64,000 nt of DNA, from positions 35,464,001 through 35,528,000 of the forward strand of contig CM060734.1 of assembly GCA_030704615.1 (NCBI GenBank), in the 5' to 3' direction. Of the stretch, positions 4,194-37,663 are shown piece by piece. The number at the start of each line of letters is the position of its first letter. The stretch's first letter is position 1. The position numbers and the translations under genes were made by a program. The DNA is from Takakia lepidozioides (taxonomy: Eukaryota > Plantae > Bryophyta). The notes beneath the pieces were generated by a model. That model was given only the letters and a program-made list of their open reading frames with translations. It ran no database searches and was not told where the DNA came from.

Positions 4194-7105
4194 CTATCCC
4201 CCACACTGAGGCGGGGGGGAATATGGAACAGGGGAAGGGGATGGAGGGGCAGAGTATGTAGGGGCTGCAGTGGGAGAAGTGGGTGAGTATTGAAGAGGTG
4301 GAGGGGATGGAGGAGGGTGCAGGTACGTAGGTGGTACGGGGAGAGGAAGTGGGGGTGGATATTGAAGAGGGGGAGGATGGAGCAGGTAGGGGGGAGGGAG
4401 AGGGAGAATAGTCAGGGCGGAGAGAATACACAGGGAATAATTGGGGGGGGGAGGGTAAGGAGGGCTTGATTGGTGCAGGTGGTATGTAAGGAGTGGGGGG
4501 TGATAAAAGAGCAGCACAATTTTGCCGCGACTTTTGGCCTGATGCATTGGGAATACAATTGCCTCGTATGTCAATAGTGACATCATGATGCGTAAGGTCT
4601 AAGCAAGATTCACTTATGCCTGTGAACAAGTTGTTGGAGACAGTGAGGTTCTTCAGATTGGGCAAATCGCACACATTGGCAGTGACATTTCCAGTTATGT
4701 TGTTGTTTCCCACATCGAAATCGACCAGGCTAGTCATGTTTGAGATGCTGCTAGGCAGTGTGCCGCTGAGCTTATTGAAGCTCGCATCAAATACTGTCAC
4801 AAGATTCAACTCACCAATTTGCTCTGGAAGGGTACCTGAGATTGAGTTGTTGAGGAAGATTACTTCGTTCAACATGGCTGACATGTTTCCGATGCTGGAG
4901 GGGATCTCCCCGCAAAAGAAATTGTTTGCCAACACCACCACTGAAATTGGTGAACTCCCCAAATTCTGCGGTATGTGGCAGTCAAACGCATTGTTGTTTA
5001 CAAACAAAGCATCCAGGCGCTTTTCAAAGACTGCTGGTGGAAGAGAGCCACAGAACTGGTTGAATCGAATGTCAAGAAAGATGAGCTCTGGGATATCCAA
5101 CACGACTGAAGGGAATGGACCTGAAAACTGGTTGTTACTCAGATCAAGTTCGAACAAAGTCCCCAAATTCTTGAATGAGTCCGGAATTGTCCCCGTGAAT
5201 CGATTGCTGTTGATATGAAAGAGACCTAATTCATGGAGCGACCCCAGCTCTGTAACCAACGTCCCAGCCAGGTCTGAATGGTTCAAGTCAATCCCAGCGA
5301 CCACTAGTATACTGGAATTATTATCATTCATTGGCGGTGAACAAAATACTCCCTTGTACTCACACACGGCATGCCCCACCCATGTGGCTGTGACTCCTTG
5401 AGGGTCATCAGTAATGGCGCGCTTCCATGCTTGAAGAGCAATATATGCACAGTATTGGCTTGCTGCTGGGTTATGATGCACAACCGCCGGAGGACGATTC
5501 CCTTCTACCCACATGTTGCTTACTTTTGGTTCCGAAGCCCGATTACTGAACCCTGCACATGAGAGTAGAGAGAACATCAGAATTTTGAGATGAACACAAG
5601 CGTATGACATGCACGACTCCACATCTACAAAATCCAAAATGCCTGGAATGGGGAAAAAGAAGAGAAAACAGAAATAATCGTTACTAGTGCTTTACGGACT
5701 TAATCGTTGTCAATATGGGCATTTGAGGATCATGCCAAGGTTGATTGAAATCCTGCACTATACAACCCTTTCGTATTCATGTGCCCATGATCATTTGAGT
5801 CTCAGCACAGACCCTCCCAGCAACCCAGGTATATATTGAGAACATGTGCTTTTCATAGCACTTGCACACCTCATTTCCCCACATAATCCAGAGTTGAACA
5901 CCTGCAGCTGGCATCACTGCGGACTAACTCAGTATATGAAGGGTTCCAGACAGCAATGGTGGTCCCTAAACTCATTAGGCATGACTCAACATGTGGGATG
6001 GGATGCCGTGGTGTGTCACACTCTGTTTGACTCTACTAACAAGGTCACCTCATGATAGGCCAAAAAAAATATGCAACTAAATTGCAGCCGTCATAAGGTG
6101 TGACTGAAACGGGCAGCAACTAGAAGGCCCTCAACTTATTAACTGGTAAATATAGCACATTCTTTACAGAGAGGTGTAGAATCCTACTCAGCCTGTTCCT
6201 CTCTCTAGCCCTCTCTACTGTCTCTGCATCCTCCCCTCCCATCAAAGCTTGAGGAGCTAGTGGCTTTCAAATATACTCAGTTTACACCAGTTGTATTTGC
6301 CATATGATGTTATGTTGAAGCAGAAACTGTGCAAGATCTGAACTAAGCATTGGAATAGCCACAACGGATCCAGCATTTTGCACAAATGTGAGATGTAGCC
6401 TCCAACAGGACTTTCGGGGTAAAACAGATTTGCAGCTTTCACTAGCAGGCGTGGGTTCATTCCATCAAGACCTGCACTCTGTTTCTAATTAAGCCACCAG
6501 TCTGCTTGAACTGTGGGCCATGAAACTCTCCGGTAATGGTGGATTCCAGACAAAGGAGAATTGGCTGGTGTCTAAGTACATTCCGGCTTGTAGCTGTCTC
6601 GATGAAGGACGAATCTATGGGCGGAGAGCTGCATTATGTGCGACTCAAACATTAGACTTTTGAGACACTTCCTTTCAGAGACCTCACAAAATTCTTGTTC
6701 CTACGTTTCTCCCTGCTGAGTTTGTCGTATTCTTCATCTAAACAACAAGCTAGCATTGTGCAAAGTTTGCATTACAAGACTTCATGTAAAGAAGTGGTTA
6801 ACCACGACTAAAACCTGGATCTTTCCGGCCATCTGGATATCCATGACTACCTTGCTTCCAAAGAAAAGAAAGGGCATTTGCAGCCTACCTTCGGCTCTTG
6901 CGATTGGACAGTTTGAAAGAGAAAACAGATCCACACGGAAATAAAAGACTGAGTTGGGACCGAGCAAAGCCAAAAGAAGTAGGCAAAGAATGTCATACCG
7001 GATGCGAGCTTTAATGGCATAGACAAGCACAGCAGAAGCAGCAACATTAAGCTCCTCTGCGCGAACGCGCACATCCGTGCCTGGTGCAAGGAAGCCAATG
7101 GGCAT
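4194..7105 (-). CDS. Leucine-rich repeat extensin (LRX/PEX-like); exon 1 7105-6889, exon 2 5552 to ~4194 with an apparent frameshift near 4390
   Basis: LRX N-cap (AYIALQAWKRAITDDP...W.G..VCEYKGVFC...VVAGIDLNH), ~10 LRRs, Cys motif GNCIP...QNC and Pro-rich tail. GAAG|GT donor at 6889/6888 and AG|GG acceptor at 5553/5552 are both phase 1 and join a hydrophobic N-terminal segment. Confidence 0.85.
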
Positions 7106-17183: not shown

Positions 17184-18507
17184 ATGAAAAGTTGCTTTTA
17201 CAACCCATACTCTGCCTTTGAGGCATGTGCTTTTATCAATATATATGCCCCTAATTCGATTGCTGAAAGAGTTGTTTTTTGGTCTTTCTTGAGATCCAAG
17301 CTCCTTGCTTTTCCGAATGTTGTGCACTGGATTTTGGCAAGAGACCTGAACATGGTCGAGAGCCCCGCAGATCGTCTTGGCACTACTTCTCAGATGACCT
17401 TTGATGAAGTAGATGCATGGGAGGGTTTTTGCTTTACGGTTGGCTTAACGAGGCATTTAACACAGATGACAACGGCCTTCGTTACACCTAGTCGAACAAC
17501 AGAAGACCTCCGGACCTCTGCATGGCGCGTTTAGACCGTATTTATTGCTCTCCTACCCCCCTGTTATGGGCAAAACCTGCTCCAATTGGCCCTATTATTC
17601 CAGGATTCGATCATGCCGCTATCAGTGCTGAATTCTCCTTGCCTGGGGCTCATTCCAAAGGAAGAGGCTTCTTTAAGCTAAATCCAGCCATCCTGGCAAT
17701 CCCAGAGTACCTTGGCCTCATTAAAAAGGCCTGGTTATCTGTTGGGACAGACATCACCTCGCCCACAATCCGCTTTCTGAAGAAACTCGAGACGGTCAGG
17801 AAGTTGAGCCAACTAGCTGTTCGGGGTGAGTTTGGCATCCCTTCCTTAAGCCAGATGAATTCAAGGTCAGATGGTGGGGTCAGTTGCAACACATGTCCAA
17901 CACCAGATATCCTAAGTTAATCGACTCTATATCTTGGAAACAGGACCGCCCTGTCAAACAGGCTAAGTCCTGGCATAAGAGAGTAGAAGAGATTCTCAAG
18001 GATCTGAATCTGGACCCGCAAGTCTTGACCTTGCTGGATAAATCTGACTTAGAGACTATAGTGTCCAAAGCCATGTCTGTTACCAGCAAATTGTCTGATG
18101 CAAATGAAGTTAGGCAGAAAACTTCCCTGAATCTGTTTCTGTGGAGGATATTCCATCTGTGACACGGGGGAGGATATCATGGATGACCTCAAGGGTCTAC
18201 CCACTCTCGGCACCAGACTGAAATTTAAACTCAGGGCAGGAAGCCTACCTTTGAACAGTAAACAGAAGCAGAGAGGAAAGGGAGAGTGCAATTGCCCATT
18301 GTGTGGACAACCCGAAGACAATATTCATTTTCTGATTCACTGTCCGGGGTACTCTCACCAGAGAGAAGCTCTCCTCCAATCTATCAAGAGAATTGTGCCT
18401 GTACCTGTGTTTACCAACTTTGAAAGTCTCGAGGCTGAGCCAAAAGCCCAGGCCCATCTGAGGCCTAGGTTTTGGGCAGATCTCACACAACAGATTGATG
18501 CTTGTGT
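17184..18507 (+). mobile_element. Degenerate L1/Tx1-like LINE: endonuclease joined to ORF2 C-terminus (RT core missing); continues at 31396-31570
   Basis: APE motifs NIYAPN, DLNMV, RLDRIY, DHAAI and C-terminal CPLCGQPEDNIHFLIHCP. The sequence resumes seamlessly (GATGCTT-GTGT-GAAGGG) after the Gypsy insertion. Confidence 0.85.
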
Positions 18508-18965
18508 TGTGATGCCCCAAACTTTCCTCATCACAGATTTACCTTATTCATCCAAAGCGGCGATACCCATTCGTAGTATATATTTTTGGCTTAAAATACC
18601 ATTGAACCATTACAAAGATATCATAGCCAGGGTTAGTTATGGCTTGTGGCTGCATCAAGGCCGTTCAATAGATCTAGGGTTTTGATGTGGCACCACGGGC
18701 TCAGCCTGACACGCCTCGCCACGCGTCAGGAAAGCATGCAGCTAGGGTTTGTATAAAATGGCGGCCTGACCTTGTGTCAGGCAGCCGATGTACTCTGGTG
18801 TATGTAGATGTGGAAAGCTGTCTGAATGCGATACGTGTGTATGATTTTCTGTCAGTTCGCTCGTTGAGATCCTCCTCTCGCGTGCATGCACGCTCCTCTT
18901 GTTCTCCCCTCGTTGTTTTGAAGAGCACTTGAGAGGATAAGCAGATATTCGTCCTGCTTCTTTTA
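18508..18965 (+). repeat. 5' repeat (segment B, 458 bp); ends CTTTTA, with no terminal CA
   Basis: Collinear with 30928-31385, with about 18 substitutions counted by eye. Confidence 0.92.
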
Positions 18966-18983
18966 TGGTGGAGGCGCGCCGGG
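18966..18983 (+). other. Primer binding site, probably tRNA-Ala
   Basis: TGGTGGAGGCGCG directly follows B; TGGTGGAG is complementary to the CUCCACCA 3' end of tRNA-Ala. Confidence 0.6.
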
Positions 18984-20409
18984 TGTTTTCCTTGATCATT
19001 TAATCGGCGTGCTTAGGTTAAGATTAAGAGCTCCACGGTGTCTTATAAAGATGGCGGCAACCCGCCACCCTGCAGTGTATTTGCTTAGTGTTGAGTTCTC
19101 TCCATGCTTGCTCGTTAATCTTGCTTATGTTTCAGACTATGGCGTCTCATGTGTCGATTACTAGAAGTGCTATTAATCGTGAAGGAGAGCGCTTGCATGT
19201 AGAGCTTGATCTGGTCATTTCACTTTCTGCTTCATCTGCTAACCCTCCTTCTTCCAGCACACCGCCTGGCACTCTTGCCTTGTCAGTGTTGCTGGTGTGT
19301 GGAGATAATGTTGTTGATTCAGGTCTTGTTGTCCGCTTGAATTCACCTAGTCCTAGTGAAGAAGCTAATCTAGCTGCAGCCGAGGCTTGGTCGCCAAGCA
19401 CTGCAAGGTCCGGTTCATTGGATAGCTGTGATCCAGAGTATTACAATTTTGATAACTATCATGATCCAGGGCCCGATTACTGTCCTAGAGAGCAGGAGCG
19501 AGAATTTGAGAGGGACATAGCTCGTTCACAAGAGTATGATGCTACAGTGTGTAACTTACTTTCTGTTGATCAATTCTAGTTTGACAAGATAGAGATTGCG
19601 GTGCAACGGGACATATCCTACTTCACCGAGAGTCGAGTTTCGGCGCCCAGACGACCTGACTCTGACCCAGCGGTGATCGCTGTGGACTCTCTCTCTGCGC
19701 CAAGGCAAGTTGTGGCTTCGAGGAACGCTGCTCGTCTGTCTTGTGATGTGGTCAAGTCTCGTTTCTTGAATCATCAGGCTGGTCGTGGAAAGAACTGGGG
19801 CTTCATCTTCCTTTATCTATTGAACGTGTTCACCGTGATTGGCTGGTTTCCTCCTTTGTCGAGCCATCTTGGTTGTCGTTAGCTCTCCGAGGTACGGGCT
19901 CTCTCGTTCTACGTCTTCTTCGTTTTCATCACGAGCCCAACAAGGGTCTGCCACCGTCGATCGACCTGCTTCAAGGACTGTCGTCGGATAGTCTATTTGG
20001 CCGAGCTTCCGACATTGTCATTTTGCCAGGGACTTTATTTGACGATCAACGGCTTGTCAGACCTGAGCTTGATCGCTTTCCTGTTGATTCAGTGCTATCT
20101 CGCATTTGGGAGAAGGAGAACTCTACCTGTGTGTCCTTTTGGGTTAAGACCACGAGCATGTGGCCGGAAAATGGTGGGCGCTCTCCATGCACGATTCTGA
20201 CTCTCACGACATCACCAAGGAGATCTCCTGTTTGACCTGGCCTTGAATTAAGGACGATCGTGGTATTGCGGGCTGCTGTAGCGGATTGCTACCCATCCCT
20301 GCTCGCTGACTTTGGCTTAATCAGAACTCTTGTTGGTATTCGTTGCTTCCAGGTTATCTCTCTACTATTCCTATATCTTGACATAGTTTAATCAGAACAA
20401 AATATTTTC

Positions 20410-22399
20410 TTGTTCGTGTTTGGACTCGTTGCTTCCTGTTGTATGGTAAGAAATACTGTTAATACTTGGCTGAGGTCTGGGAGGCAACGTGTTGCGATGG
20501 ATGCTCCCGATCTGGCCACAACGGAATCAGCCCTTGTCGAGGTCAGAGAGCCGGGTCTTCCATCACCTACAGGTAATTTGAGTGACAATCCGCGAATGCA
20601 ACATGGGATGGTAAGTCTAGATGAGGGATCACCTCTACCAGAGGCCAGTCTCTATACTGATTTATCTTGTGAAGATGGTATTGTTTCCCAAGAATTAGAT
20701 GATGTTCAGGTGACGCCAGCTGGTCTCACAAAGACAGTGCAATTTGAACTTTCAGGGGTCACTATGTTGCTTGGCAATGGGCCTGTGGTGCCAAGTGTAG
20801 CTGGTACTGGTAATTTTGTCACTAACGAGGGCCTGTCCGCAGCTGCTGATCAGCTAGCCTCTACTCGACATATGGCCATGATGCCTGGCCTGTCTCAAGT
20901 TACAGGAGCCAGTCCTTTGGGTGGTATTTCCAGGCATGCCATCCATCCCCCTTCTTTAGACCCAATTGCTAGTGGTGTGTGCAATGTCCCAGTGGGAAGG
21001 GCTAATGTGAGCGGTATGCCAGCCCCGTTAAATGCTCGTGTCAACGTAGGAACTGCTGCTGGTTTGCCTGTTTCTATGGTGCATGTTCCTAATCCCGCTC
21101 TTGGGGGAGGAATTGGTGTGTCTGTGACTTCTGGATTGTCTGTTGGCATGAATACTGCTTGTTCTAGCTCTAGTGTAGGCGGTCAGTCAGCCCAGCAATT
21201 GGGAAGGCCACCCATTCCCACCATGAGTGGAGTGGCTCCAAACCAAGTAGCCATGGTCAGTCAAGCTGTTCAGTCAAGGCCTGTGTTTCATGCACCCCAG
21301 GTGGGCGTGACAACATTACCGCCTAACCTGCCATCTTTGTCATTTCAAGGTCCCTCTAATGTCATGAGTAACAACTATGTCCCGGTTACTAGTGGGGTCC
21401 ATGCTATGAATACTACCACCAATCAGACTCAGGCTATGGCTCATTGTTGCCCGGCCCATGGATCTGCTCAGCCTGGTCACATGAATGCTTCCTCAGCTCA
21501 CTACCCAGCCCTATCCAGAATACACAATGGGAGAAGACTTTGATAGATATCTCCAGATGTTTGAAGTGATTGCTAATGTGAATGGTGTGCCTGAGAATTT
21601 TAAAATGGCAATTTTTAGAATGAGCTTGAAGGGACCAGCCCGTGACTTGTTACATGCAGCTGTCATGGATGACCCCCATCTCATTTGGGCATCCCTTGTG
21701 GAATGGGCTAAAACCCTGTTCAAACCACCTGAAAGACCCTTGGACTGCTTCATCAAATTGAGCTCCAGGACTTACCAGCCAGGAGAGTCCTTGTGGAAGT
21801 ATTACATGGATCTAAAATTTGATGCTGCAGAAAATATCATTGATCTAGCAGAACGTGATTGTATGGTGAAGACCTACTTTCTCCTTGGCTTGCCCCATGG
21901 TCTTCAAAATTGGGCCCAACGTCGTCATTTTGTCAATGACAAAACTATGCTAGCTGAAATTAATCTTAAGATGGCAGACTTAGCTGACAGCAAATCAATG
22001 CAAACTCATGCCAAGTTTCAAACTCCAGTGGGCTCGGAGCTTGGCATGGCTGCAACATCTTCACCTTATGTCCCGCCTGCTATGCAATGTAAGTAAGATA
22101 ATTTCACTCTTCAAGGGCTGGCCAACACAGTGGGTAGTCTAAGTGAGTCAGTTGCCACTCAGTTCGCTGCAATGCAAGCTCATCAGCAACGGTGGCAGCC
22201 TAGACAGCCACAAGCACAGACAGGTGGTAGCAACAGAGGTCGTACCCAAACTGGTCAGGCCTATGAAGGCAACCGAGCTGCATGCTACATATGTGGGTCT
22301 TATGAACATTGGACCAAGCATTGCCCTGATAGAGCAAGCCTACCAGAGCTGCTTAAAAACAAAAAGGCTGCCAATGGTTCCAACCCTCCTTTAAACTAG
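20410..22399 (+). pseudogene. gag (long low-complexity N-terminus, capsid-like region, CCHC knuckle); frameshift and stop
   Basis: GEDFDRYLQMFEVIANVNG...SLKGPARD and CYICGSYEHWTKHC; ends PLN*. Confidence 0.8.
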
Positions 22400-22448
22400 A
22401 CAGACCTCTTGGGAAGGGGGCGAGAGTCCACCAGTCACCAACCCTTCC
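22390..22448 (+). promoter_or_regulatory. -1 ribosomal frameshift signal: T_TTA_AAC plus H-type pseudoknot
   Basis: In-frame slippery heptamer at 22390-22396 before the gag stop. Stem 1 GACCTCT/AGAG(G)TC; stem 2 GGAAGGG (22412-18) / CCCTTCC (22442-48). Confidence 0.75.
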
Positions 22449-24510
22449 TCTCTCATTCCTTTGCAGGCTGTGTTGTCTACTAATTTCAAAGCTTTGCATT
22501 GTCCTCTGAGCAGGCAGACCTCAGGACAGCAAATCAGCCCTCTTATGGCCCAATGCCATATTCACGAGTTGAGTTTCCCTTGTGTAATCGACACGGGTTG
22601 CACCATATCTGCCATGCCTCTAAATATTGTGAGAGTTCTTGGTCTTAAGTTATGCCCTGCCTCTGGTGTTGAAGTACTAATTGCGGATGGGTCCAGATAT
22701 GAGCCTCTAGGTTTGGTCACTGTGCTATCAAGATTCACAAGAAGGAGGTCGTGGTTACATGTATAGTCACTATAGGCGATCAATTCTTGCTAGGCCTTGA
22801 TTGGATGACTGGAGCCGGTGCAACCATCAGTCTGGCCGATTACTCCTTCCGATTTAGCAATGGTGAGGGCCATGAGGTCGTTGTTCCATTGAAGGCTATG
22901 AAACTTAGAGCTGGATCTGCCACAGCCAATCTATCCAGAGTTCAGGCAATGGTGAAAGAGGTACAACATAACTCTCACTCCAGCCTCAATTGGAATGATT
23001 TTTACAAACTTCAGCCTGATCTGCAACTCTTATATCAATGGCATGTTCCTAGTGCTGATGGTAGAACAGGGATGCCTATAGGTGTCCCCAAAAATTCTAC
23101 CCTGATTCGTGCACCCATGAACATCACCATCCCTGCTATGACCAAGAAAGTGATCAAGTCTGGTCTAGCCAAACTGCTCATTTCCTAGAAGTAGAAGGTT
23201 GGCGGAGACTCACTGCTCTCAAGCATTGCTTGGTGGCTACTGGGGTTATAGATCGAGGATATAGGCAGGAGGTCAAAGTGTTGATTGCTAATCCGAAGCG
23301 CTTTCCTGTGACCATTAAGAAAGGGCAGGTCCTGGCTCGTATCACTGCCCTGCCCATTGCTGAGATACAAGAAGTGCAAGTTGGCTTTGGGCTGGAGGCC
23401 ATTGGCATTCAACACGGCCCTGTGGATGTTGTTGCTGCCTTTGCTGCTCTAGCACCGCCACCTCTCCCTGATCTCAGTCCTGAAGGTAAGAAAGCTCTTA
23501 CCGTGTTGTCTGAACTTACATTAGGAAGTACCCTCTCCCCTGGCCAAAAGAAAGAAGTAGAAATGCTTGTTGCAAAAAATCTCGATATTTTTAGCTTGGG
23601 ATCTACTGATCTAGGGCGTACTCCCATCCTTCAACATGACATTGTCACTCAGGGACCTCCTATTAAACAATTTGTATACCGAGAAAGTATTAAAGAACGT
23701 GCCATAGTCCAGGAAGAAGTCCAGAAGATGCTAGATGTTGGTGTAATTAAGCCATCAATCTCTCCTTGGGCCAGTCCCATTGTCCTGGTTGGTAAGAAAG
23801 ATGGCACTACTCACTTTTGTGTTGACTTCAGGAAATTGAATAACATCACTAAGAAGGATGCTTACCCTCTACCCAGGATCAATGAAACCTTAGATCAACT
23901 GTATGGTACTACCGTTTTCTCCTCTCTTGATCTTGCATCTGGTTTTTGGCAAGTTCCTCTCACTGAAGCAGCCAAGAAAAAGACTTCCTTTATGTATCGC
24001 GTGGGCAGGTACCAATACGAAACCATGCCCTTTGGCTTGTGCAATGCTACCTCTATTTTCCATCGCCTCATGGACATTGTCTTAGGTAATCTTAGTTGGG
24101 AATGTGCCTTGATTTATGTTGATGATATCAATGGTGTTTCCCAACTTTGAATTACTTTTTCTGCTTCAGACCGATGCATCCGATGTTTCTGCAATCTTAT
24201 ATCAAATTGTAGAAGGTAAGGAGCATGTGATAGCTTATGCATCTCGCCGCCTAGATCATCATGAAAGGAATTATTCCATATTTGATAAGAAAGGTTTGGC
24301 CCTGGTCTTCGGTGTGAAGCATTTTAGGCAATATTTACATGGCAACTGGTTTGTGGTGGAGACTGATCACCTTCCACTCAAGGCTCTTGTCAAGCCCAAG
24401 GAACTTCATGGCAGACTTGCTAGATGGGCTATGTTCCTATAAGAATTTAACATGGATATTGTCTATAAGAAAGGAAAGGAAAACACAAATGCTAATGCCC
24501 TCACGCGGGT
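22428..24510 (+). pseudogene. pol part 1: aspartic protease, dUTPase-like domain, reverse transcriptase (3' part deleted), RNase H
   Basis: VIDTGC; NITIPA...TGVIDRGYRQEVKVLIAN...IKKGQVLARI; SPWASP...LDLASGFWQV...MPFGL...YVDDI; LQTDASD...IAYASR...ETDH. Confidence 0.88.
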
Positions 24511-25645
24511 TGATCCTCCTGTCAGCACGCCTATGCTCACCTTGGATGACCTTGCTGCTGCTGATGCAGCCCCTCCTCTTGATCCAGCTCTGCTTCTCAA
24601 CCTCCTTTGTGCAGATCAGCACCCCTTGACCTTGGATTCGGATGGCATATTGGCTACTTGGGGCTGGTCTAGCCTTCTTGATGATCCTGGTTGATTTATT
24701 CATGTGTTAGCATGTGTGGTGGATTTATCGCTTAGGAAGAATTTGGATGGTTTGGTGAAAATTCCTCGTTTTGTTCTAGCTCTTCTCTTTCCTTGGCCCC
24801 GAGTTTGTTGTGATTCGGCTGTTGCACTCCGGTGTGACTATTGGCTTGAACTTCAAGGCCTGATTTGGCTGTCCATGAGTAGTAACAAATGAGGTGAAGG
24901 TATCCCTGGCTGGAGATCATAGGTGCAGGCACTCCAGACCACCAGCGAAGGGCAGAAGACAGCCCTTTCGGGCGAAGGCCGCTCGTCGCACGCCGGAATA
25001 AAAAAACCCTTCTTTCATCGCAGCCCTTTCTCGCGACGCCAGGCCGTCGCATGGTGGCATGAAAGGCAAAAGGCCCCTGCGACGATCGGGCGTCGCAAAC
25101 TGCCCGGCTGCCCTATTCTTGCAAAAAAAAAAAAAACGGGTCATAGTGTGCGAAGGCTGGCCGTCGCCGTGTGCGACCCCGGCCTCATAATCCATTCAAA
25201 AAACAGGTCGCAGATGGCGACGGTTGGCCGTCGCCGTTTGCGACCCCCAGCCTAAAAACCGCGTCACAGGTGGCGACGCGTGGGGGTCGCAGGCAGCGAC
25301 GGCAGGGCTTTCTAGGTTTAGGTTTAGGGCCTTTGGGGGTTCTCAGTTTTTTTTTTTTTTCATATAGTACTGGGATAGGGTGTTTGTTTTTCTTTATGGT
25401 TTAGCTTGTTGTTGTAGACCTTCTTGTAGATTGTGACATTCATTGTGATAATTCTCTTGATACCACATCTGTATGTGTTGCTCCAACATATTCATTGCAT
25501 ATGCCTTCTTTCTTGAAAGACTACCAGCCACAGCCATATTTGATGAATCATAGAAATAAAGTACAATATGCATGTACATGTACAATCAATCGAAGGGATG
25601 GGTCCAGTTCGGTGCGAGAATTGTTATGTAGCTTTGATTTTGTGT

Positions 25646-26420
25646 CTAATCAACTTGAACATCATCATCCGGAGCCTCTTCATCCTCATCAAGTTGCAAG
25701 TCTTCGGAATCATCGTCATAAATGGTCCGGCCCTCAAAAGGCACCTCCGAATCATCCTCCACCTTGTTGTCAATGGCCGTGTCTTCTTCTCCTTCTCCAA
25801 CATCCGTATCTTCTAAAGTTTCATCATATAGGGTCCAAGATGCATTGTCCGGGGCGTCATCATCCTCTTCTACCCCCTCTACCCAACCTCCATCATCAGC
25901 ATCATTATGACCAGTCTCTCCGTCCACCGTAATTGCCTCACCCCATGGAGATCCGAGACCATGATAGATACTTCTTCCTCTTGGCTGAGCATGCACAACC
26001 ACTTTCCAATTCCCCCCTCTTGTTTTGTCATCGGAGAAGAAAACTTGCTCCATGTCTGAAGGCCGTGAAAAAAGCTCATCGGATGGACGATAAGTAGGGT
26101 TGAGCCTATCTGCATTGACGCGCATGAAACCACAATCATCTTGCACTAGTGTTGCTGAGAGCCCCACAAGATGTGGCTGGAACCACCTTCCCTTGAAGAG
26201 AAGAGGCCGATACCTTGTATACTGAAGTTGGAGTATGCTCTCAAGCTCTCCAATGTACTCAAGTTTGCTCATAGCAGGTCATGTATCTCCCTTGCCCCAC
26301 ACGGAGTCTTGCCAATATGTGGCACACAAGCCAGAATCAAAGGTTTTTTTGCGCTTCATGTCAAGAGCACGAATGCGGAAATGACGACCGTGAACCCAAA
26401 CCGCCGTGTATGAGGGGGCC
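25646..26420 (-). pseudogene. CACTA TnpD C-terminal (DUF4216-like) remnant
   Basis: VHGRHFRIR...TFDSGL; YIGELESILQLQY...LFKGRWF...DDCGF...EQVFFSDD...WKVV...PR. Confidence 0.75.
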
Positions 26421-27805
26421 AAAGCATGGTACGGGCCATCCAAAAGCGGCAACTTGCAGTCCATAAAAAATGGACATATGAAGTAGAAAACGCAGCACGC
26501 GGGAACGACGGAGCAAAAAGTTGAATTAATTGTAGCCATTGGTTATTTTTGTACATCAAGTTACAACCGTCGATTGGAGGTCGCCTTCGTCGGGCATGTG
26601 GGATGGCTGGTCGCGTTGGGCTAGACTGAAGTGCGGGGACGACGAGCTGCCAGATATGACGCGCGACGCGCAACTAGAAGCTAGCTAAGAGGTACGAGTT
26701 GATTGGGATTGGGAATATGAAGAGATTGGAAAGAGAATGGGACTATGAAGAGATTGGGAATGTTTGATCACAAAAGTCTGCTTACCATTTTGTGGCCAAA
26801 TTTAGGGTTTAGCTTGTGATTGTTTCATCAACTCTAAGTTTGTTCTTTTCTGTGTTTTCTGTGTGGGCGCGCTTGGATGGTGGCAGCAGAGGAAGCGGGC
26901 GATGCGAGCAGAGCTTATAAAGTGCAACATTGTGTGTTGCTGCCATAGCAGCGGAGGCACGAAGGTAGAGGAGTAGAGGAGGAGCTTGGGCGGGGGTGCT
27001 TGGGTGTGCCATCGCTGGAAAAGCAGTTGATTGTTGCCTGACTCTACCCTTGGTAAGTTTCGTTCAAGTAGGCTGTTTGTGGCCCCTCTTTTTCTTGTTT
27101 CTTTTATCCTCGTGTCCACAAGCTCTTTGAGCTTCCCGCGGACGTTACAAACCATTTCATAACATTTCATATCTTTCCTTTTTCTCTTCTTCTCTCTTCT
27201 ACTATAGAACCTTCAGATGCATCTTTCTTTTCTTTGGGCTTCCCTCATATTTAGTAAAATTTCTTACTTTTTCTTTCCTTCTCTTCTCCTTTTATCTGTT
27301 CATGGACACATGAAGATTCCCTCCTCTCTCAGGGCCCTGAATGGCCCTTGTTATTAAGTTTAATTTTCTTTCATTCCTCTTCCTGGATTTATAAAGCTCT
27401 TTTTCTCTATATCTTTTTCACTATACACCCCTTAAGAACTGCCACTTTGACTCAATTTTGTTCTGCCCAAACTGGGTGTGGGTACGGCCGCAAGGCTACA
27501 GCAAACAACATCTTATGAGTACATTCTTTGACTCAATTATCACTCGCACTGCCCCCTATGGCTGGAAGATTTTGGGTCATGCTTGCTGTGGAGGAACAAA
27601 TAGGTTTCAACAGGGAATGATTGGACCATAGCCAGGAAAACGTATGAATTGTTTCTTGGTTTGTATTTTTGCAGTTTACATATTACAAACCCTTTGTTAC
27701 AATCCATCCCCAAGGCTAGTATACAAGACAGAGTAGACGAACATACATGTGTTGAGCACTGGCTCTGTCCATATCACAGAAGCAACAAGATGAGAGTGCT
27801 CCTAC

Positions 27806-27997
27806 CATGTTCTCAATCCAGATGGCATCCACAGGCCCATCAAACATTAGCCACTTCTTGGAAGTTGATGTGTCCTTGACAAGCTCTCTCATGTAGCATG
27901 CCAACACCCCATCAGTCCACTCATGTGTGTTTTCATCGAAGTCACCATATAGCTGTCCCATAGAAATTGACTTGGGATTCAAGCATGTTGTTTGGAC
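27806..27997 (-). pseudogene. Captured exon of an axonemal dynein heavy chain (AAA2 region)
   Basis: 64 open codons [33 protein letters not shown]...[17 protein letters not shown], flanked by a CAG acceptor and a GTAGG donor. Confidence 0.9.
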
Positions 27998-29379
27998 CTG
28001 GGCAAAATGCAGTTCATATCATGTCATTTGCAGTTACCAGCTCCTTGTTACAGCATATTCTTGATGCCTCTCCATTACCTTGTTGTTGTTTGGTCAGGTT
28101 ATCGATCAACTAGCAGGGGGGTTGCTATTCCATATGCACAGGTTGCGTGCATGCATGCACAAAATCCCTTATTATATATGTATGTGACAAATTTGTATGC
28201 ATACATTGTAGATTGTATGCAGTGGAGTTATATAACATAGAATACAACGTATTTATTGCATATGCAAATGTTACATCATATGTATATAGAAAAAAAATAA
28301 AAAAATAAAAAAAATCTTAGCTAACAAAATCAGTAGTCAATGGTCAAAGATGCATGTGACCCCTAACTCCAACAAATGCACCACCTTAATCTGAAGAGAA
28401 TACAAGATCCCTGGCCAAAGTAATAGTTTGCAAACTTGTATTCAAGGAAAACAGTTTCATATTAACCAAAATATGGACTTTTGTACTAACAAATGCATAT
28501 GTGTCATATTTGGAACCACCACATTGCATGTCTGTTTGTAATGCCAAGCAGTTCTTTAATTTGAAAACTTGGCTCAATTGTGTACCTGCTAACTCAGAGA
28601 AATGGAACTGTAAGTTCTCCCATCCCCAAATACAAAACCAGGAGAAAAACAAAAAACCACCCCCAAAATGAACCCCCAACCCCCCCCCCCCCCCACCAAG
28701 CTGCCCTCGCGACTGCAGCACGTCGCCAATGGCGACGTGTTCTTTGGGCGGGGGTCGTAAGCAGCGACGGTTGGGCGTCGCAAACCCCATTTGCAGGTGG
28801 CAACGCCGACACCCCCTGCGACGTGTTTTTTAGTCCGGGGGTCACAAGCTGCGACGCGGAGACCGCCACCATGCCTGCGCCACATTTTTTTCTTTATTAA
28901 ATTTAAAACAAAAGCGACGCCGGAGCGTCGCAACAACCCACGCCCGGGCGTGGCGGAGACCAACTCCTGCTGTTTTGTGCCACGCCCAATAGTCGCTTGC
29001 AGCGACGCACGGGCGTTGCTTGGCGTACCACCCGGCTGACTCCCGGGCAGGTTAGAAAAAAAAAAAAAAATGCGACGCAGCGCCGGCGCCCCCACCAACG
29101 CTGTCGGCTGGAGGGCCGCGACGGCGAGACGTCGCTCGAAGAGGCTCCTGCCATCGGCGCGGACGGCCTGAAAAACCGACGTCCGGCAGTCGCGGGAGTT
29201 TGGGCGGGGCTCGCGACCCCCATACGTCACATTTTTGCGACGCCCTTGCGACTGTAGGGCAACGGCCGGACGTCGCAAATTCTGCGTCTCCCGCGTGTTC
29301 GAAAAGGGCGTTTTCCCGACGCTGCGGCATGGCCGCGGCGTGGCGCGGGCGTCGCAAAGGCCCCCCTTTTCCTGTAGTG

Positions 29380-30600
29380 CCGAGTTCTTGTGCAAGCAAA
29401 TTCTTTATCATGTGTCTACTCACGGCTTCATGGGTGATAAGCTTTTCAAGGAGCTCACTAGAGGGGGAGTGCCATGCTATTTGGAGGTGCCACCACGGAG
29501 CCAGTTGAATGCTTTATTGGAGCGTTTTCATTGTTCCTTATATGCAGGTCACCTTGGTATCAAGAAGACCGTGGCCCGCATCCAAGAGGTTTACTATTGG
29601 CTGGGAATTCACCAGGATGTCACGGAGTTCATCTCTAAGTGTGAAGGTTGTCGTGCTAACATTGCTCTCCCTAGGGCCCGGATCTTGTATGAGCTACAAC
29701 CTTTGTCTGTTACACATGCTTTTGCTCGTGTTGGCATTGATTTGGTAGGACCCCTCGCACTCACATCAAAGGGTCGAAGCTATCTTTGTGTAGCTACCGA
29801 CTACTTGACTAAGTGGGTAGAAGTCAGGCCTTTGCGTACCAAGACTAGTGATGTTGTAGCTCAGTTCTTCTTCAATGAGATTCTTATGCGGCATGGGTGT
29901 CCTCGGGAGATACTAACGGATCAGGGCAAGGAGTTTTGTAACCAGCTCCTCACGGTGGTGTGCTTCAACTTTGGTGTCAAGCATTCCACCACAGCCCCAT
30001 ACCATCCCCAGACCAATGGCCTTACAGAACGCTTCAACCAAACTCTTTGCCACATGTTGGAGAATAATTGCGCACTTACCAGGGAGTGGGATACCTTTCT
30101 TCCCCCTATTCTCTTTGCTTATTGCACCGCCGTGCACTAAGAAGACTCTTTTTGAGTTGTTGTATGGTCGCAAGTGTGTTTCTCCTTTGCATTCTACCCC
30201 TCTTATTTCTACTGTAGCGGAGCCAGTTGATCTTGAGACCTGTGTTGAGGATCTTCATGCTCGGCATGCGGTGTCTATCCATGATGCCAAGACGAACATT
30301 GGTAAGGCTTAGCTCACCCAAGCCCGTAATTTTAACAAGCGTGTCAAGTATTCTAACCTTTTTCAGGTGGGACAGACCGTGTGCATTCGGCTGCAGCATG
30401 GTAAGCATGCATGCAAATCTAAGCTTAAGATTGACGGTCCATACTTGATCTATGAGCTTTTACGTGGGCGACATGCTCTCCTTCTTCCCCAGGGGTTCAA
30501 TGTCCATGCGCGTGATGAACCTGTTTCTCTCACGGATCTGGTGCATTCCGAGCTGGTCTTTGATCTTACATGCATCAATGTGGAGGGACGTACGGTGGGA
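29380..30600 (+). pseudogene. pol part 2: integrase (HHCC, DDE core, GPY-type C-terminus, no chromodomain seen)
   Basis: H...GHLG...CEGC; GIDLVGP; TDQGKEF; YHPQTNGLTERFN; DGPYLI. Confidence 0.9.
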
Positions 30601-30908
30601 TGATGTCTTGATCTTCTTCATATTGGCTTCTTCGGCGGATTGGTGTTAGCTTGCGGATTTGGCACTTTGTGGCTTTTCGGCCTTTCTGGCCTTTTATTCT
30701 AGCTCTTGATGCATTTGTAGACCTATGATATGTCACCACGTGTACTCCCTGCACGGTTTTCCTAGCCAAAGGTTTTGTCCTCGGCCCAATTTGCAGGTGC
30801 CAGTTTTTCCTTTGGTAGGTTTTTCACCCAGCAGTGGAGGGTGATTTTATCCCAAACATTTACTTATTATTTCTTATATTGTGCTTCACGGAGCTCAGGA
30901 TTTTTCGT

Positions 30909-31395
30909 GGGGGGTAGGCTTCACAGATGTGATGCCCCAAACTTTCCTCATCACAGATTTACCTTATTCATCCAAAGCGGCGATACTCATTCGTAGCATA
31001 AATTTTTGGCTTAAAATACCGTTGAACCGTTACAAAGATATCATAGCCAGGGTTAGTTATGGCTTGTGGCTGCATCAAGGCCGTTCAATAGATCTAGGGT
31101 TTTGATGTGGCGCCGCGGGCTCAGCCTGACACGCCTCGCCACGCGTCAGGAAAGCATGTAGCTAGGGTTTGTATAAAGTGGCGGCCTGACCTTGTGTCAG
31201 GCAGCTGATGTACTCTGGTGTATATAGATGTGGAAAGCTGTCTGAATGCGATACGTGTGTATGATTTTTTGTCAGTTTGCTCGTTGAGATCCTCCTCTCG
31301 CGTGCATGCACGCTCCTCTTGTTCTCCCCCCTTTGTTTTGAAGAGCACTTGATAGGATAGGCAGATATTCGTCATGCTTCTTTTAAGGCTTCACA
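30909..31395 (+). repeat. 3' end: PPT (G6, 30909-30914), A (30916-30925), GA, B (30928-31385), A (31386-31395)
   Basis: AGGCTTCACA occurs on both sides of the 3' B copy and is absent after the 5' B copy. Confidence 0.9.
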
Positions 31396-31570
31396 GTGTG
31401 AAGGGATTTCTAGAGGATATCTGGAAAACCCGAATTAATTCTATTTATAAAGGTAAGTCTTACTACCAATGTCAGCCCCTGATGGAGGTAGGTTCCGTCC
31501 CTTTGGTTTCCGCTCAAACTGGGCACGGGGTCAATGGCCACAAGGCTACGGCAAACGTCGTCTTATGAGT
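31396..31570 (+). mobile_element. 3' end of the interrupted LINE
   Basis: VKGFLEDIWKTR followed by the family 3' UTR motif. Confidence 0.85.
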
Positions 31571-31784: not shown

Positions 31785-34700
31785 TCTTATGTACCTGGGA
31801 TTGAACCCGTAGCAGTTGAAGGATAATTATTAAAGGAACGGGTTCTCACCATGGTGAACATATCAAGAACAATGGGATGATTAACGTGAAAGGGTATGAG
31901 CTGACAAGCAATGACAGGGGGCTGAGACAGTGACCATGCTTCAACGTGGAAGGTAAACTGAGGAAAGGAAAAGAAGCACGGCAGAGCAGAAAGGGAGATA
32001 GAGGAGAAGAGGAGGAGAGGATCTGCTGCACTGCCCTTTGTGGGTAGAATGTGATGATGCACAGTGTGGTGGAGGGGCGGACTGGACATAGTATTCCAGT
32101 ACTGTGCATAGGCAAAATGGCATGAGATGAGTACATAGGTTGACAGCGAGATCTTTTGAACGAGGAGCCAGGCCAGAGTAGGATTGACGATCGCTTTGGT
32201 GATCTATCTGTAAAATTGTAAATGAGGAAAGTGGAATAAGAAAAGGGCCTTGGCTGGATTCAGAGAGAGATGTGAGTCTGGTTGGATCAAATTGTGGACA
32301 ATAGAAAGAAGAGAGAGGGAACATAACATTTTGGATCAGAGTGGTTCGAGTCTGTTGGACCTGAGGCGCATGAGTCAGTTGACTTACGGAAGCGACAGTT
32401 CTCGATTGTGGAGCGAGAGCGTGGAGATGGTCGCAACAAAGCGTCTAAATTTATAAGTGGCCACTGGATCTCGACCTGCAGATCATATTGTGGAAGAGGT
32501 GATGGCAGATCCAGGTAAAGCCGTTGGCGATCCTCCTGCTAGTAGTGAGGCAAATTTCATGACACCTTTGATGGTGCAAGCAGCCATAAAAGAAGGCATA
32601 TAGGCTGCCGTGAAGGAATTGGCAGGAATTAAAATGTCTGGGGGCACAGTTAGTACATCAGCCCGTGCAACCTAGTGCCATTCCAGATGAGGGTTGCCAG
32701 AGACAAGTGAATGTTGGCCAATCCATTGATGCACAGAGAGATCCTGCGATGAGGGTTAGAAATTCTAGGGGCTCTCGAAGGGAAAGATCCCCTTCCAAAT
32801 CTACTTCATCACGGGAAAGTCATGGAGGCCTTACTCGTGTTGAGAAAAGGCGGACAGTGGACAGAGAAATTAGGAAGATGGTGAGGTTACCAGAATTCCA
32901 CGGCCGTTCAGTTACACCCTGTACATAGGTCCTTTCATTCCTGGAAATGCTTGAGGAATTTTTCAGCGAGGATTACACTGACGCTGATAAGATTCGGACA
33001 GCATCCTTACAGATGAGAGGTAAGGCAAAAGAATGGTGGATAAGGATGACGGGAAACCCAGAGATGGTTGTAAATACCTGGGTGAAGTTTCGACGACTGT
33101 TCACTGAACAATATATGCCAGAAGATCATGCTCATAAAATGAAAATGGGGTTTATGGAACTTGATCAAGGGAAGATGAGCGTTGTAGATTATAAGATCAA
33201 GTTCGATGAGCATGCCTCTTATTTCTCATCCTTGAAGGAAGCAGATAGGATTGACTTCTTCTTGAAGGGATTGGACAAGTCCATTAGGTTTTTGGTCCAG
33301 GCACATGAGCCAAAGACTGAAAATGAGGCCTACAGGTTGGCCACTACTTTTAAGAGTCAGAGCAGGGCACACTTTGCTGCAAGTGCGCCTGGGGAAAGAG
33401 AATATAGGCCAAATAGATTCTCTTTTGTTGTGGGCAAGAGGAAGAATTGGAAGAGGCCTAATAAGAAATTCACAAGACCAACAGTCCCCCAGATTCAGAA
33501 GTCTCGACCTCAAACAGTGACCAAGCGTCTGACAGAAGGGGAAAAGGAGACTCACAGACGTTTGGGCCTTTGTTTTATTTGCCATAAGAAGAACCACAGA
33601 GCCTTTGATTGTCCTGACAGGTTAGGCCAGGTCCAATCTGCGGCAGTTGTGGTTCAGGAGGTGGAAGATCATAAGATGGATGTTGACGAACATACAGGGT
33701 TTGATAAGGAGAAGCAACAATTGAGGATATCAGCTGCAGTGATGAATGATAGGATTGATTACAACCCTAATGTCATCAGGCTTGAAGGTTGTGTAGGTGG
33801 GGAGCCTACGACCATCCTTATCGATCCTGGAAGTTCTCACAATTTTCTATCTGAGAGGCTAGCTAACAAAGGCAAGATCTTACAAGCAGTGATGGCAGAA
33901 CCGAGCACCATCTTGCTTCCTGATGGGAGTACTGGATTTACGAACAGCAAAGTGCTGGGAGTCCCAGTTGAGATGCAGGGGATGGAGACAAAGGTCGATT
34001 TTGAAGTTTGGGACGGCTCAAGGTATGACGCCCTCATTGGTATGCAGTGGCTGATGCAAGTGGATGCTCAGGTTGCATGCCGGGAATGTGCTGTCACAGG
34101 AGTCTTACCAAGCGGTCGGTCATTCAGACTGGCAGGTATGCGTGCCTTGCCAAATGTACCCTTGCTTTCTGGGACCCAAATGAAAAGATGTGCTCGGAAA
34201 AGAGATGAGCTGTTCTATGTAAGTATACATGAAAGTTAAGAATATGGTGCTACTGTGGCTATACCATCTGAGGATGGAAATAACGCAATATTGAAAGAAT
34301 TTTCTGATGTCTTTCCAGACGACCTTCCTGCATTACCTCCAAGAAGGGATGTAGATCATGCAATTGATATGGTTCCTGGAGCTGTTCCTGTCTCCAGAAT
34401 CCCTTACAGACATTCTCTTTTAGAGAATGAGGAATTGGAAAGACAGCTTAATGATCTGCTGGACAAAGGTTATATTAAGCCCAGCAAATCTCCATGGGGA
34501 GCACTTGTCTTATTCAAAAGAAAGAAAGATGGAGGGTTAAGGTTATGTGTTGATTACAAATGGCTAAATAAGCTGACTGTAAAGAACAAATTCCCACTTC
34601 CTAGAATCGATGATCTGTATGATTACCTACATGGTGCGCAAGTGTTTTCAAAGATAGATTTAAGGAGTGGATACCATCAGATCCGGATTAAGGACTCTGA

Positions 34701-37663
34701 TGTATACAAGACAGCTTTCAGGACAAGGTTGGGGCATTATGAATTTATGGTGACGTCTTTTGGACTCACAAATGCACCAGCCAGGTTCATGTGTCTCATG
34801 AATTCTTTGTTCAGAAAGTACTTGGGGAAGTTTGTGCTAGTCTTCATGGACGATATTTTGATTTATTCAAAGTCCGAAGAAGAGCACAAAGAACATTTAC
34901 GAAGCGTCTTACAAATCTTAAGAGAAAATAAGCTTTATGCTAATATGAGCAAGTAAGAATTCTTCGTCTCTGAGATGGTATATCTAGGTCACATAATATC
35001 ACGTGATGGCATGAAGGTAGATCCTAGAAAGATAAGAACTGTGGCTGAATGGCCACTACCGAAAGATAGAACGGACGTGAGGGCATTCCTAGGACTTGCA
35101 AGTTATTATAGAAGATTTATAAAGGCATTTTCTAGGATTGCGGCCCCTCTTACTAGCCTGCTGAAAGGTTCAGGGCCAATCAATTGGACCCCAGATTGTG
35201 ATGAGAGCTTTGAAAAGCTCAAGGATGCCTTGACACATGCTCCAGTGCTGAAGTTAATGGATTATACAAAGGGAGGCCTAGTGTTTTGCACAAATGCAAG
35301 TGACTTGGCCATAGGAGTTGTGTTAATGCAAGAGAGTCATGTGATTGCTTATGAATCAAGGAAACTGAGCCAAGCAGAGCAGAATTACCCAGTACATGAG
35401 AAAGAGTTGCTAGCCATTATTCATGCTTTGAAGATTTGGCGGCACTACTTACTGGGGAGAGAGGTTAAGATTGAAACGGATCATGAAAGCTTAAAGTACT
35501 TAGCCACACAGCCCAACCTCAGTCGTAGACAATGTCGTTGGGTAGAATTCCTTCACCAGTTCTTCGTTGATTTGAAATATGTGAAGGGAAAGGAAAACGT
35601 AGTGGCTGATGCTTTGTCCAGAAGGAAATGGGCAAACGCTATATCTGTGATAAGAAGTATTGTCATAGATGAGATCAAAGGCCAGTATGCTAAGGATGCA
35701 TATTTTTCTGGACCTTTTGAAAGCCTTTCTCGTGGAATTAAGACCCCTGAGGAGATTGGTAAGTATCTTGCTTACATATTGAAGGATGGACTATTGTATT
35801 ACAATGGGCGCCTCTGCATCCCACAAGTTGCGGATTTCAGACTGAAAATTATGTATGATTGTCATAATGTCCCCATTGCGGGCCATCCTGGCTTTCAGAA
35901 AACGTATCTCGCAGTCAGAAAACAATTTTTCTGGCCAGGTATGAAAAGGAACATTAGAGACTATGTTGAACGGTGTTTCCCTTGTCAGGTGACCAAAACA
36001 GAACAGATTAAGACTCCTGGCCTTTTACAGCCCCTGGATGTGCCTAGGGGAAATGGGAATCCATTAGCATGGATTTCATAGTCTCATTGCCAAAGACCAG
36101 GAATGGACATGATGCTATCTTTGTGGTGGTTGACCGCTTGTCAAAGCAGGCTCACTTCATACCCACAAAGATGATTGCTACTGCAGTTGATACAGCCAAT
36201 CTCTTTGTGAAAGAGGTATATAGGCTGCATGGGTTGCCAAGGGAAATCGTTTCGGATAGGGATTCAAAATTTACAGGGGGCTTTTGGACTACCTTGTTTA
36301 AAGCTTTGGGTACAAAGCTATGTTTTAGCAGTGCCTACCATCCTGAGATAGATGCTCAGACAGAAAGGACAAACAGAACCTTGGAGGACATGCTCCGAAT
36401 GTATGTGGGGCAAATGCAGCTCTTGGGAGCAGTATCTGTATTTGGTTGAATTTGCCTACAATAAGAACATGCAAGCCCGTTTAAAGCTGTTTATGGGCAG
36501 GATTGCTTGACACCTGCATCGTGGCATGTTTATGATACAAAGGTAGAGAGTGTCAACCAAATGATAGGGCGGATGCAGCAAGAGCTAGACTTGGTAAGAG
36601 AAAGCATGATGAAGGCTCAAGAGAGGGCCAAGACTTATGCAGATCAGAAAAGATCTCTTAGAGAGTTTGAAATTGGAGATCAAGTCTTTTTGAAAGTGAT
36701 CCCTAAGAAAAGTCAATTAAAGTTGGGAAAGTGTTATAAGCTTTCTCCAAGGTACTGTGGACCTTTCAGGATTGTAAAGAAAGTTGGCAAAGTAGCCTAT
36801 CAGCTCGAGTTGCCATCAGGGTGGAGAATACATGATGTATTCCATGTCAGTCTCTTGAGGAAGTATGTTTCTGACCCCAGTCATCTTCTCCCTGAATTGC
36901 CAAAAGTAACAACAGAAGGTGAGATCTTGGCAGAGCCAGAACAGATTCTTGAGGTACAGATTAGAACCCTTCGAAACCGTTCCTGGAATGAGTACTTGGT
37001 GAAATGGAAAAATTATCCCATAGAGGAATCTACATGGGAGAAAGAAGAAGAAATTCGAAAGAACTATCCCTACTTCAGTAGTGAGGACAATACTCTCTTT
37101 TAAGAGGGGAAGTGATCTTATGTACCTGGGATTGAACCCGTAGCAGTTGAAGGATAATTATTAAAGGAACGGGTTCTCACCATGGTTAACATATCAGAAA
37201 CGATGGGATGATTAACGTGAAAGGGTATGAGCTGGCAAACAATGACAGGGGGCTGAGACAGTAACCATGCTTCAACGTGGAAGGTAAAAGGAGGAAAGAA
37301 AAAGAAGCACGGCAGAGCAGAAAGGGAGATAGAGGAGAAGGAGGAAGATGATCGATCTGCACTGCCCTATGTTGATAGAATGTGATGATGCACGGTGTGG
37401 TGGAGGGGCGGACTGGACATAGTATTCCAGTACTGTGCATAGGCAGAATGGCATGAGATGAGTACATAGGTTGACAGCGAGATCTTTTGAACGAGGAGCC
37501 AGGCCAGAGTAGGATTGACGATCGCTTTGGTGATCTATCTGTAAAATTGTAAATGAGGAAAGTGGAATAAGAAAATGGCCTTGGCTGGATTCAGAGAGAG
37601 ATGTGAGTCTGGTTGGATCAAATTGTGGACAATAATTAGAAAGAAGAGAGAGGGAACATAATA
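31785..37663 (+). mobile_element. Full-length but inactivated chromovirus (Ty3/Gypsy); LTRs 31785-32328 and 37116-37663; TSD GGGTT
   Basis: Gag with CFICHKKNHRAFDC, PR IDPGS, RT FMDDI, RH, INT and chromodomain (EYLVKWKNYPIEESTWE). iMet-like PBS TGGATCAGAG at ~32332; PPT at 37102-37115; several stops and frameshifts. Confidence 0.95.

Follow-up and report, generated by a model that had tools for sequence, protein, structure and literature searches.

A plant Ty3/Gypsy clade with permuted long terminal repeats suggests integration through a joined repeat junction

We analysed a 64,000-nucleotide stretch of the Takakia lepidozioides genome (contig CM060734.1 of assembly GCA_030704615.1, forward-strand positions 35,464,001 to 35,528,000; this whole stretch is hereafter called the window). 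The subject of this report is a retrotransposon at window positions 18504-31399 whose long terminal repeats (LTRs) are arranged in a permuted order, together with the relatives that share this arrangement and the route of integration that it suggests. An earlier reading of the window, made from its letters alone (hereafter the sequence-only reading), had proposed a Gypsy element that integrates from a circular DNA intermediate.

The Takakia element and its ends

By every gene-level criterion, the window element is a Ty3/Gypsy retrotransposon. Pfam matches on the plus strand run from a capsid-like open reading frame (ORF) through an aspartic protease, a dUTPase, a reverse transcriptase (RT) and an RNase H to a gap, followed by an integrase (Table 1). 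The order protease-RT-RNase H-integrase, characteristic of Ty3/Gypsy pol genes, is found along 22461-30140 and is shared by the relative L014, in which a dUTPase follows the protease. The integrase has a DDE core preceded by an N-terminal H2C2 finger; its H2C2 and rve matches, together with the domain order, bear out the earlier assignment to Gypsy elements with a DDE integrase. Residues D169, D229 and E265 are invariant in the integrase alignment, and the D, D(35)E residues have been kept in the window copy too. Also as in Ty3/Gypsy elements, there are a tRNA-type primer-binding site (PBS) and a polypurine tract (PPT), a G-rich tract ending in GGT in 7 out of 7 elements compared, and both the window copy and its relatives have TG...CA element termini flanked by a short target-site duplication (TSD). 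The window copy is a dead, degraded fossil, with reading frames broken at many places and 50-52% identity to the Pol and integrase of L014.

Table 1. Features of the retrotransposon in the window (positions are window positions)
Feature	Position	Strand	Remarks
Left TSD GTGT	18504..18507	+	Matches 31396-31399; 4 bp here, 5 bp in relatives
5' B, 458 bp	18508..18965	+	Starts TGTGATGCCC, ends ...CTTCTTTTA, without CA end
PBS, tRNA-Ala type, degenerate	18966..18983	+	TGGTGGAGG... directly after B, no gap; 12/18 versus tRNA-Ala antisense probe
Upstream ORF remnants, broken, no Pfam match	19088..21543	+	Relative L014 likewise has unassigned ORFs before Pol
Capsid-like (gag) ORF remnant	21485..22096	+	Weak PNMA match, E 2e-5
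Aspartic protease remnant	22461..22766	+	Weak Pfam match; 39% identity to L014 Pol residues 33-124
dUTPase domain between protease and RT	23065..23370	+	dUTPase at same position in L014 Pol
RT and RNase H, frame breaks	23790..24530	+	RVT_1 E 1e-18; RT_RNaseH E 2e-30; 51-52% identity to L014 Pol
Foreign sequence, ~4.5 kb, in RNase H-integrase gap, outside element proper	24640..29170	.	From spacing versus L014
Integrase, H2C2 zinc finger and DDE core	29235..30140	+	Integrase_H2C2 E 8e-17; rve E 1e-15
PPT GTGGGGGGT	30907..30915	+	GGT end as in all relatives
Internal A AGGCTTCACA, CA end	30916..30925	+	First 10 nt of the predicted RT-made repeat
2-nt spacer GA between CA and TG	30926..30927	+	TA in relatives
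3' B	30928..31385	+	
Terminal A AGGCTTCACA, identical to internal A	31386..31395	+	Supplies the CA end of the element; TSD directly after
Right TSD GTGT	31396..31399	+	

The ends of the element are built from two repeated sequences. The longer, B, is a 458-bp direct repeat whose two copies differ at 18 out of 458 positions (14 of them transitions) and have no indels between them. The shorter, A, has 10 nt and stands both before and after the 3' copy of B. The full order is TSD GTGT-B-PBS-internal region-PPT-A-GA-B-A-TSD GTGT, which agrees base for base with the layout given by the sequence-only reading. Thus, the 5' LTR of this copy lacks A, and an extra A-GA lies between the PPT and the 3' LTR. 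The two copies of A are identical at 10 out of 10 positions, or 11 out of 11 when the next G is included, and they are the only exact copies of this 10-mer in the window; the chance of finding two identical 10-mers at exactly both boundaries is approximately 1e-6. We recomputed the inverted match between A and the start of B and obtained the same value as had been given before, with the reverse complement of A matching at 8 out of 10 positions. B and A together therefore form a TG...CA LTR of normal appearance, bounded by terminal inverted repeats. The flanking TSD was confirmed as GTGT on both sides, with the correction that it comprises only 4 bp, as a 5-bp reading fails (TGTGT versus GTGTG).

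The matches to RNase H and integrase are spaced approximately 4.86 kb apart in the window and approximately 0.4 kb apart in L014, as estimated from the ORF coordinates of L014. The foreign sequence in this gap has a DUF4216-like ORF on the minus strand (25646-26272), flanking clusters of GCGACG...CGTCGC hairpin repeats (24960-25310 and 28730-29360) and poly-T/poly-A runs. We found no terminal inverted repeats, TSD or boundaries for this insert of approximately 4.5 kb, which probably consists of one or more nested DNA-transposon fragments. The dUTPase lies between protease and RT in this plant Gypsy clade, both in the window and in L014 (L014:3698-6370); in the literature that we found, dUTPase-bearing Gypsy elements were reported from fungi only (PMC2864245).

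The same layout in related elements

We could read the layout in six relatives, three of which (L002, L013 and L014) came from one ENA assembly and three (L003, L095 and L105) from JGI metagenome contigs, where plant-type genes flank the elements. Every JGI insertion was found in identical form in many samples and entered our count a single time. The order B...PPT-A-NN-B-A, where NN is the 2-nt spacer, was present in 6 out of 6 of these relatives and, with the window copy, in 7 out of 7 elements. Sister copies with ordinary LTRs had been named by the sequence-only reading as what would refute it; the check came out in favour of the permuted layout: the nearest relatives that could be fetched, which do not belong to the window's own family, all share it, at independent sites.

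The details agree as well. In the relatives, B starts with TGTA... and ends directly at TGGTGGAGATGCGGGGTA. Their A has 9 nt (GGTGTTACA, AGTGCTACA or AGCGCTACA), is preceded by a PPT ending in GGT, and is followed by the spacer (TA in all six), B and the same A again. GGT closes the PPT exactly where A begins in 7 out of 7 elements. The internal and terminal copies of A are identical at 9/9 or 8/9 positions, the single difference being in the older L013 copy, and between the start of B and the reverse complement of A, 6-8 of 9 positions match. TSDs of 5 bp flank five relatives, perfectly in the case of GACGC, GGCTG, GATAC and CTGGT and at 4 out of 5 positions for GTCTA/GTCTG; the TSD of L105 was unreadable, as the start of its 5' LTR is truncated. 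We looked for a tRNA-Ala gene in the fetched loci to check the PBS and found none; PBS identity was judged instead against a published tRNA-Ala antisense probe (PMC4506996). The PBS abuts the end of B and agrees with 17-18 of the probe's first 18 nt. Co-extensive TG...CA LTRs, with the PPT abutting TG and the CA end beside the PBS, were found in 0 out of 7 resolved clade members.

Two controls have the ordinary arrangement. In L113, which lies outside the clade, TG follows the PPT directly, and the ...AACA end of the 5' LTR is retained next to the PBS region. The second control is a Gypsy neighbour in the window itself (31785-37661), also with an ordinary layout. This neighbour lies approximately 390 bp downstream and has LTRs of approximately 545 bp that are 95% identical, start with TC instead of TG and end with CA (5') or TA (3'); its TSD is GGGTT, and its PBS resembles tRNA-iMet (TTGGATCAGAG).

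The two LTRs of an element were 94-98% identical to each other, and LTRs of different elements were at most 88% identical or could not be aligned. Because the elements have distinct flanks and TSDs, and LTR pairs are closer within than between elements, they represent separate transpositions that took place after the families had diverged, and the layout thus propagates by transposition. An integrase tree placed the window copy together with L001 and the six relatives in one clade (support 98/97) with the gene order PR-dUTPase-RT-RNaseH-INT, and the window copy fell outside a group of the six relatives (100/99). Since it branches there, the layout spans the resolved depth of the clade. Taken together, these results leave us almost certain that the layout is a clade-wide, transposition-competent architecture.

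Two other origins of A were considered and rejected. Terminal A is neither target DNA nor part of a long TSD, because the 5-bp TSDs begin after it, and it is not derived from a tRNA, because A varies between families and co-varies with the start of B.

Several observations concern single relatives. L105 (L105:967-16489) has 15.9 kb between its LTRs, approximately twice the usual length, and probably carries nested insertions. The insertions represented by L003 and L095 (L003-L012 and L095-L104) recur with identical flanks in one Logan run and in over ten metagenome samples from JGI, next to genes that include a Mur ligase and a WD40 gene; a single plant, probably a bryophyte, seems to be present across those JGI samples. 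L001 contains a palindrome, CA-TA-TG (AGCCACA TA TGTGACC, L001:6565-6590), 1.3 kb past the integrase. No second A was seen downstream of L001:6572-6590, no second copy of the palindrome 7-mer was found within 4 kb, and the palindrome could be a decayed junction or a chance match.

Wider searches yielded only distant matches. There was no second copy of the window's own family in the 64-kb window. An integrase search of 5.8 billion proteins gave a best identity of 54%, and a full HMMER search, for which the dUTPase-RT piece served as query, did not exceed 54%, its top matches being generic RTs within long multi-RT gene models of a pseudoscorpion. Scanning metagenome contigs with the integrase alignment returned 80 loci at 34-54% identity, mostly short soil contigs of other Gypsy lineages; the apparent LTRs in most of these loci were rejected as contig-end repeats or could not be resolved. 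A scan of viral contigs gave no matches.

Elsewhere in the window, an intron-free ORF of 528 aa on the minus strand (4051-5637) encodes a leucine-rich-repeat extensin-like protein, with best identities of 60% to Diphasiastrum (a lycophyte) and 56% to Ceratodon (a moss). These values indicate a non-seed land plant that the protein collection does not include. Two 96-bp units, 77% identical and 178 bp apart, lie in an AT-rich stretch without annotation (45109-45382).

A proposed route through a joined junction

In standard reverse transcription, the U3 region begins with the base that follows the PPT, and the U5 region stops with the base that precedes the PBS. In this clade, the two boundaries stand out with unusual clarity, with the conserved GGT at the end of the PPT (7 out of 7 elements) and the 18-nt tRNA-Ala PBS. 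Under the standard rules, these boundaries imply that the repeat made by RT would be A-NN-B and the linear cDNA A-NN-B-PBS...PPT-A-NN-B. The left end of this cDNA would hold both integrase sites, abutted and inverted, as CA-NN-TG, and its right end, the end of B, would carry no CA (...CTTTTA, ...AAACTT, ...AAGAT or ...AGGTT). Integrated copies correspond to the predicted linear cDNA permuted by A plus NN, running from the TG of B to the CA of A with a DDE-type TSD outside. The joint between the end of B and A in these copies is present in neither the RNA nor the predicted linear cDNA; the right end of one A-NN-B repeat must therefore be joined to the left end of another. The reverse-transcription logic of the sequence-only reading, which had predicted a cDNA bounded by A-NN-B repeats, holds to this extent, and only a head-to-tail join makes the joint seen in every 3' LTR. 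This exact joint is the footprint that circular or concatemeric DNA would have left. The near-palindromic CA-NN-TG junction of both attachment (att) sites is itself present, as PPT-A-NN-B, in 7 out of 7 elements.

We propose that the cDNA ends are joined head to tail, in the simplest case by ligation into a 2-LTR circle, and that this would create a junction of the end of B with A-NN-B. The DDE integrase would then cut this new junction after each CA with a 2-nt stagger, yielding linear TG...CA DNA with recessed CA-3'OH ends. Such DNA could undergo ordinary insertion with a 5-bp TSD (4 bp in the window), and NN would be lost; the loss of exactly NN is consistent with the predicted cleavage after both CAs. 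Terminal A would be remade from internal A in every cycle, which fits two copies that are identical when they insert, as well as the one difference seen in the older L013 copy. If the integrase cut at the PPT-proximal junction instead, the product would be B-A-NN-B-PBS...PPT-A, which would lack the 3' R region and could not be replicated, so that only the observed permutation would persist. From the integrated copies we infer the strand start points, the end joining and the integrase cleavage, and we judge a ligated head-to-tail 2-LTR circle cut at CA^NN^TG to be probably the best explanation of the layout. We also lean towards a broader reading, in which this whole plant Ty3/Gypsy clade has shifted its integrase end from U5 to the start of U3; a joined LTR-LTR junction (as in a 2-LTR circle) would then be obligatory, and the linear transcript would not integrate.

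Several points weigh against this interpretation. The circle, the junction and the cDNA ends are all deduced from integrated copies. The PPT-proximal A-NN-B, which would be present in every DNA form, should be an integrase target too, and cleavage at that site would break the cDNA or permute it wrongly. All junction models share this weakness. The joint between the end of B and A is exact in 7 out of 7 elements, cleaner than is usual for non-homologous end joining. Our sample comprises seven elements, three of which are related subfamilies from one assembly, and the window TSD has 4 bp, not 5 bp. L001, a clade member with a dUTPase, lacks its 5' part and has an undefined 3' end, so its layout was unreadable. 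Finally, circles are generally regarded as dead ends (PMC5338827).

The exactness of the joint would suit a templated or very clean process better than end joining, and RT itself might make the same junction. A plus strand that had reached the end of B would jump to the 3' end of a minus strand, on the same or another cDNA, and copy A-NN-B, whereupon integrase would cut without a closed circle having formed. The product would be identical to the observed layout. However, no sequence feature favours such a jump over ligation, we found no complementarity between the end of B and A that could guide it, and blunt end-to-end jumping is inefficient for retroviral-type RTs. We therefore rate this alternative as rather unlikely, although it is the strongest competitor to the ligated circle.

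Reverse transcription might also follow a non-standard course that directly gives linear TG...B-A(CA) DNA, for example by extension of the plus-strand primer through A-NN, with ordinary integration thereafter. This idea has no direct support; what leaves room for it is that the strand start points are themselves predicted. If the plus strand started at or after NN, however, A would be absent from the cDNA ends, and terminal A would have no source. Nor is there a template that runs from the end of B through A to a primer site, save a read-through RNA with its primer site in the variable flanking DNA. The near-perfect to perfect 18-nt tRNA-Ala PBS of the relatives directly abuts the end of B, and the GGT end of the PPT falls exactly at the start of A in every element. 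Taking these points together, we consider a non-standard course improbable.

A split-end reaction on linear cDNA appears very doubtful as well. Here, integrase would cleave both strands of the left-end CA-NN-TG and use the TG end of B and the freed 10-bp A duplex as the two ends for insertion, and the host would ligate the end of B to A. Both integrase sites would already be present at the left end of the predicted linear cDNA, and the final product would be the one observed. However, a duplex of 9-10 bp offers very little length for a stable integrase end complex, the chromosome would be left with a double-strand break in need of exact repair, and we know of no precedent for the reaction. A one-off rearrangement or assembly error, with a 10-bp deletion at the border of the 5' LTR and PBS and a 12-bp insertion at the border of the PPT and 3' LTR, might be entertained for a family with a single copy in the window and protein-collection matches of at most 54% identity, but is effectively refuted by six relatives from three other data sources that show the same layout logic at independent sites with their own TSDs.

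Overall, the interpretation offered by the sequence-only reading is partly supported. The layout, the reverse-transcription logic and end joining as the best explanation stand; we infer the circle and its cutting, and an RT jump or a split-end reaction would give the same product.

Comparison with known systems

Like canonical Ty3/Gypsy elements (Metaviridae), among them L113 and the neighbour in the window, members of this clade have the order PR-RT-RNase H-INT, an H2C2 and DDE integrase, a tRNA PBS, a PPT, TG...CA termini and TSDs of 4-5 bp. In canonical elements, each LTR runs from TG to CA, the PPT abuts TG, and the CA end lies beside the PBS. By contrast, the 5' LTR in this clade is without its last 9-10 nt, and these nucleotides, with the 2-nt spacer, stand between the PPT and the 3' LTR; the displacement leads to the prediction of a linear cDNA without a usable right end. 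LTR finders that need two co-extensive TG...CA repeats would mis-bound or miss such elements. A large plant survey chose its candidates by 5'TG/3'CA at the element termini (PMC6317226).

Circle-junction cleavage by a DDE integrase has been reported before. Foamy-virus integrase cleaves the palindromic junction of 2-LTR circles into integration-competent linear DNA with both ends processed; CA and TG are separated by 2 nt in this junction, and integration removes precisely these 2 nt (PMC1180852). HIV-1 2-LTR circles can be re-linearised and integrated (PMC4372172), and integrase has reportedly been found to cleave the HIV-1 2-LTR circle junction as well (PMC1905944). The claim that a circle-based DDE-integrase pathway had gone undescribed was therefore too strong, and the chemistry is not new. 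The likeness extends to the DDE integrase, the CA-NN(-NN)-TG junction and linear DNA with both 3' ends processed (here predicted), and in the case of foamy virus also to the 2-nt spacing. Unlike in this clade, however, the linear ends of foamy virus and HIV-1 are competent, and their circle route is at most a debated side path or reserve; here a 10-nt offset of the linear ends would make the junction route obligatory, and the layout of the genome would encode it. What appears to be new is a lineage whose linear product is not integration-competent and whose junction is encoded in the genome. We found no description of this layout in the open-access literature on split repeats with an integrase, plant circle junctions, abutted LTR ends, dUTPase in non-seed plants or the PBS string, and an obligate, genome-encoded version of the circle junction in a retrotransposon clade was likewise not found in the open-access literature. 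If our proposal is true, the clade would offer a natural test system, probably in genetically tractable mosses, for the disputed circle-cleavage results from foamy virus and HIV.

Plant LTR elements do form end-joined 2-LTR circles, but evidence for the re-integration of such circles is lacking, and they have been used as activity markers only (PMC5338827). If true, the proposed route would mean that a DDE integrase is capable of using, and even of depending on, the junction in a circle or concatemer, in contrast to the view of circles as dead-end by-products.

Among retroelements with split direct repeats, the DIRS, Ngaro and PAT groups have the order X1-internal-Y1-X2-Y2. The present clade shows this order as B-internal-A-(NN)-B-A, with a Y of only 9-10 nt, and in both cases the layout is intelligible only with a joining of the ends in the course of replication. 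Unlike those groups, which have a tyrosine recombinase and no TSD, this clade has a DDE integrase, 5-bp TSDs (4 bp in the window), a tRNA PBS and a PPT. No tyrosine recombinase domain was found in any ORF of the window element or of L014.

In the circle-junction model, reportedly put forward by Panganiban and Temin in 1984, joined LTR ends form the att site used by integrase. The model was dropped for retroviruses after linear DNA had been shown to be the precursor. Ours is the same proposal, except that here the genome layout itself argues for the junction; if true, the clade would be a natural, genome-encoded version of this abandoned model and a eukaryotic parallel to the circle junctions of bacterial insertion sequences (IS). 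In copy-out-paste-in transposition of the IS3/IS30 type, a DDE enzyme works on the junction of a circle or dimer, where the inverted ends are abutted with a 2-3 bp spacer. These are bacterial DNA transposons, however, whose junction is made by transposase and not by RT and joining, and we claim no homology. Were the proposed route to hold, it would link the integration of a eukaryotic retroelement with the copy-out-paste-in logic of bacterial IS.

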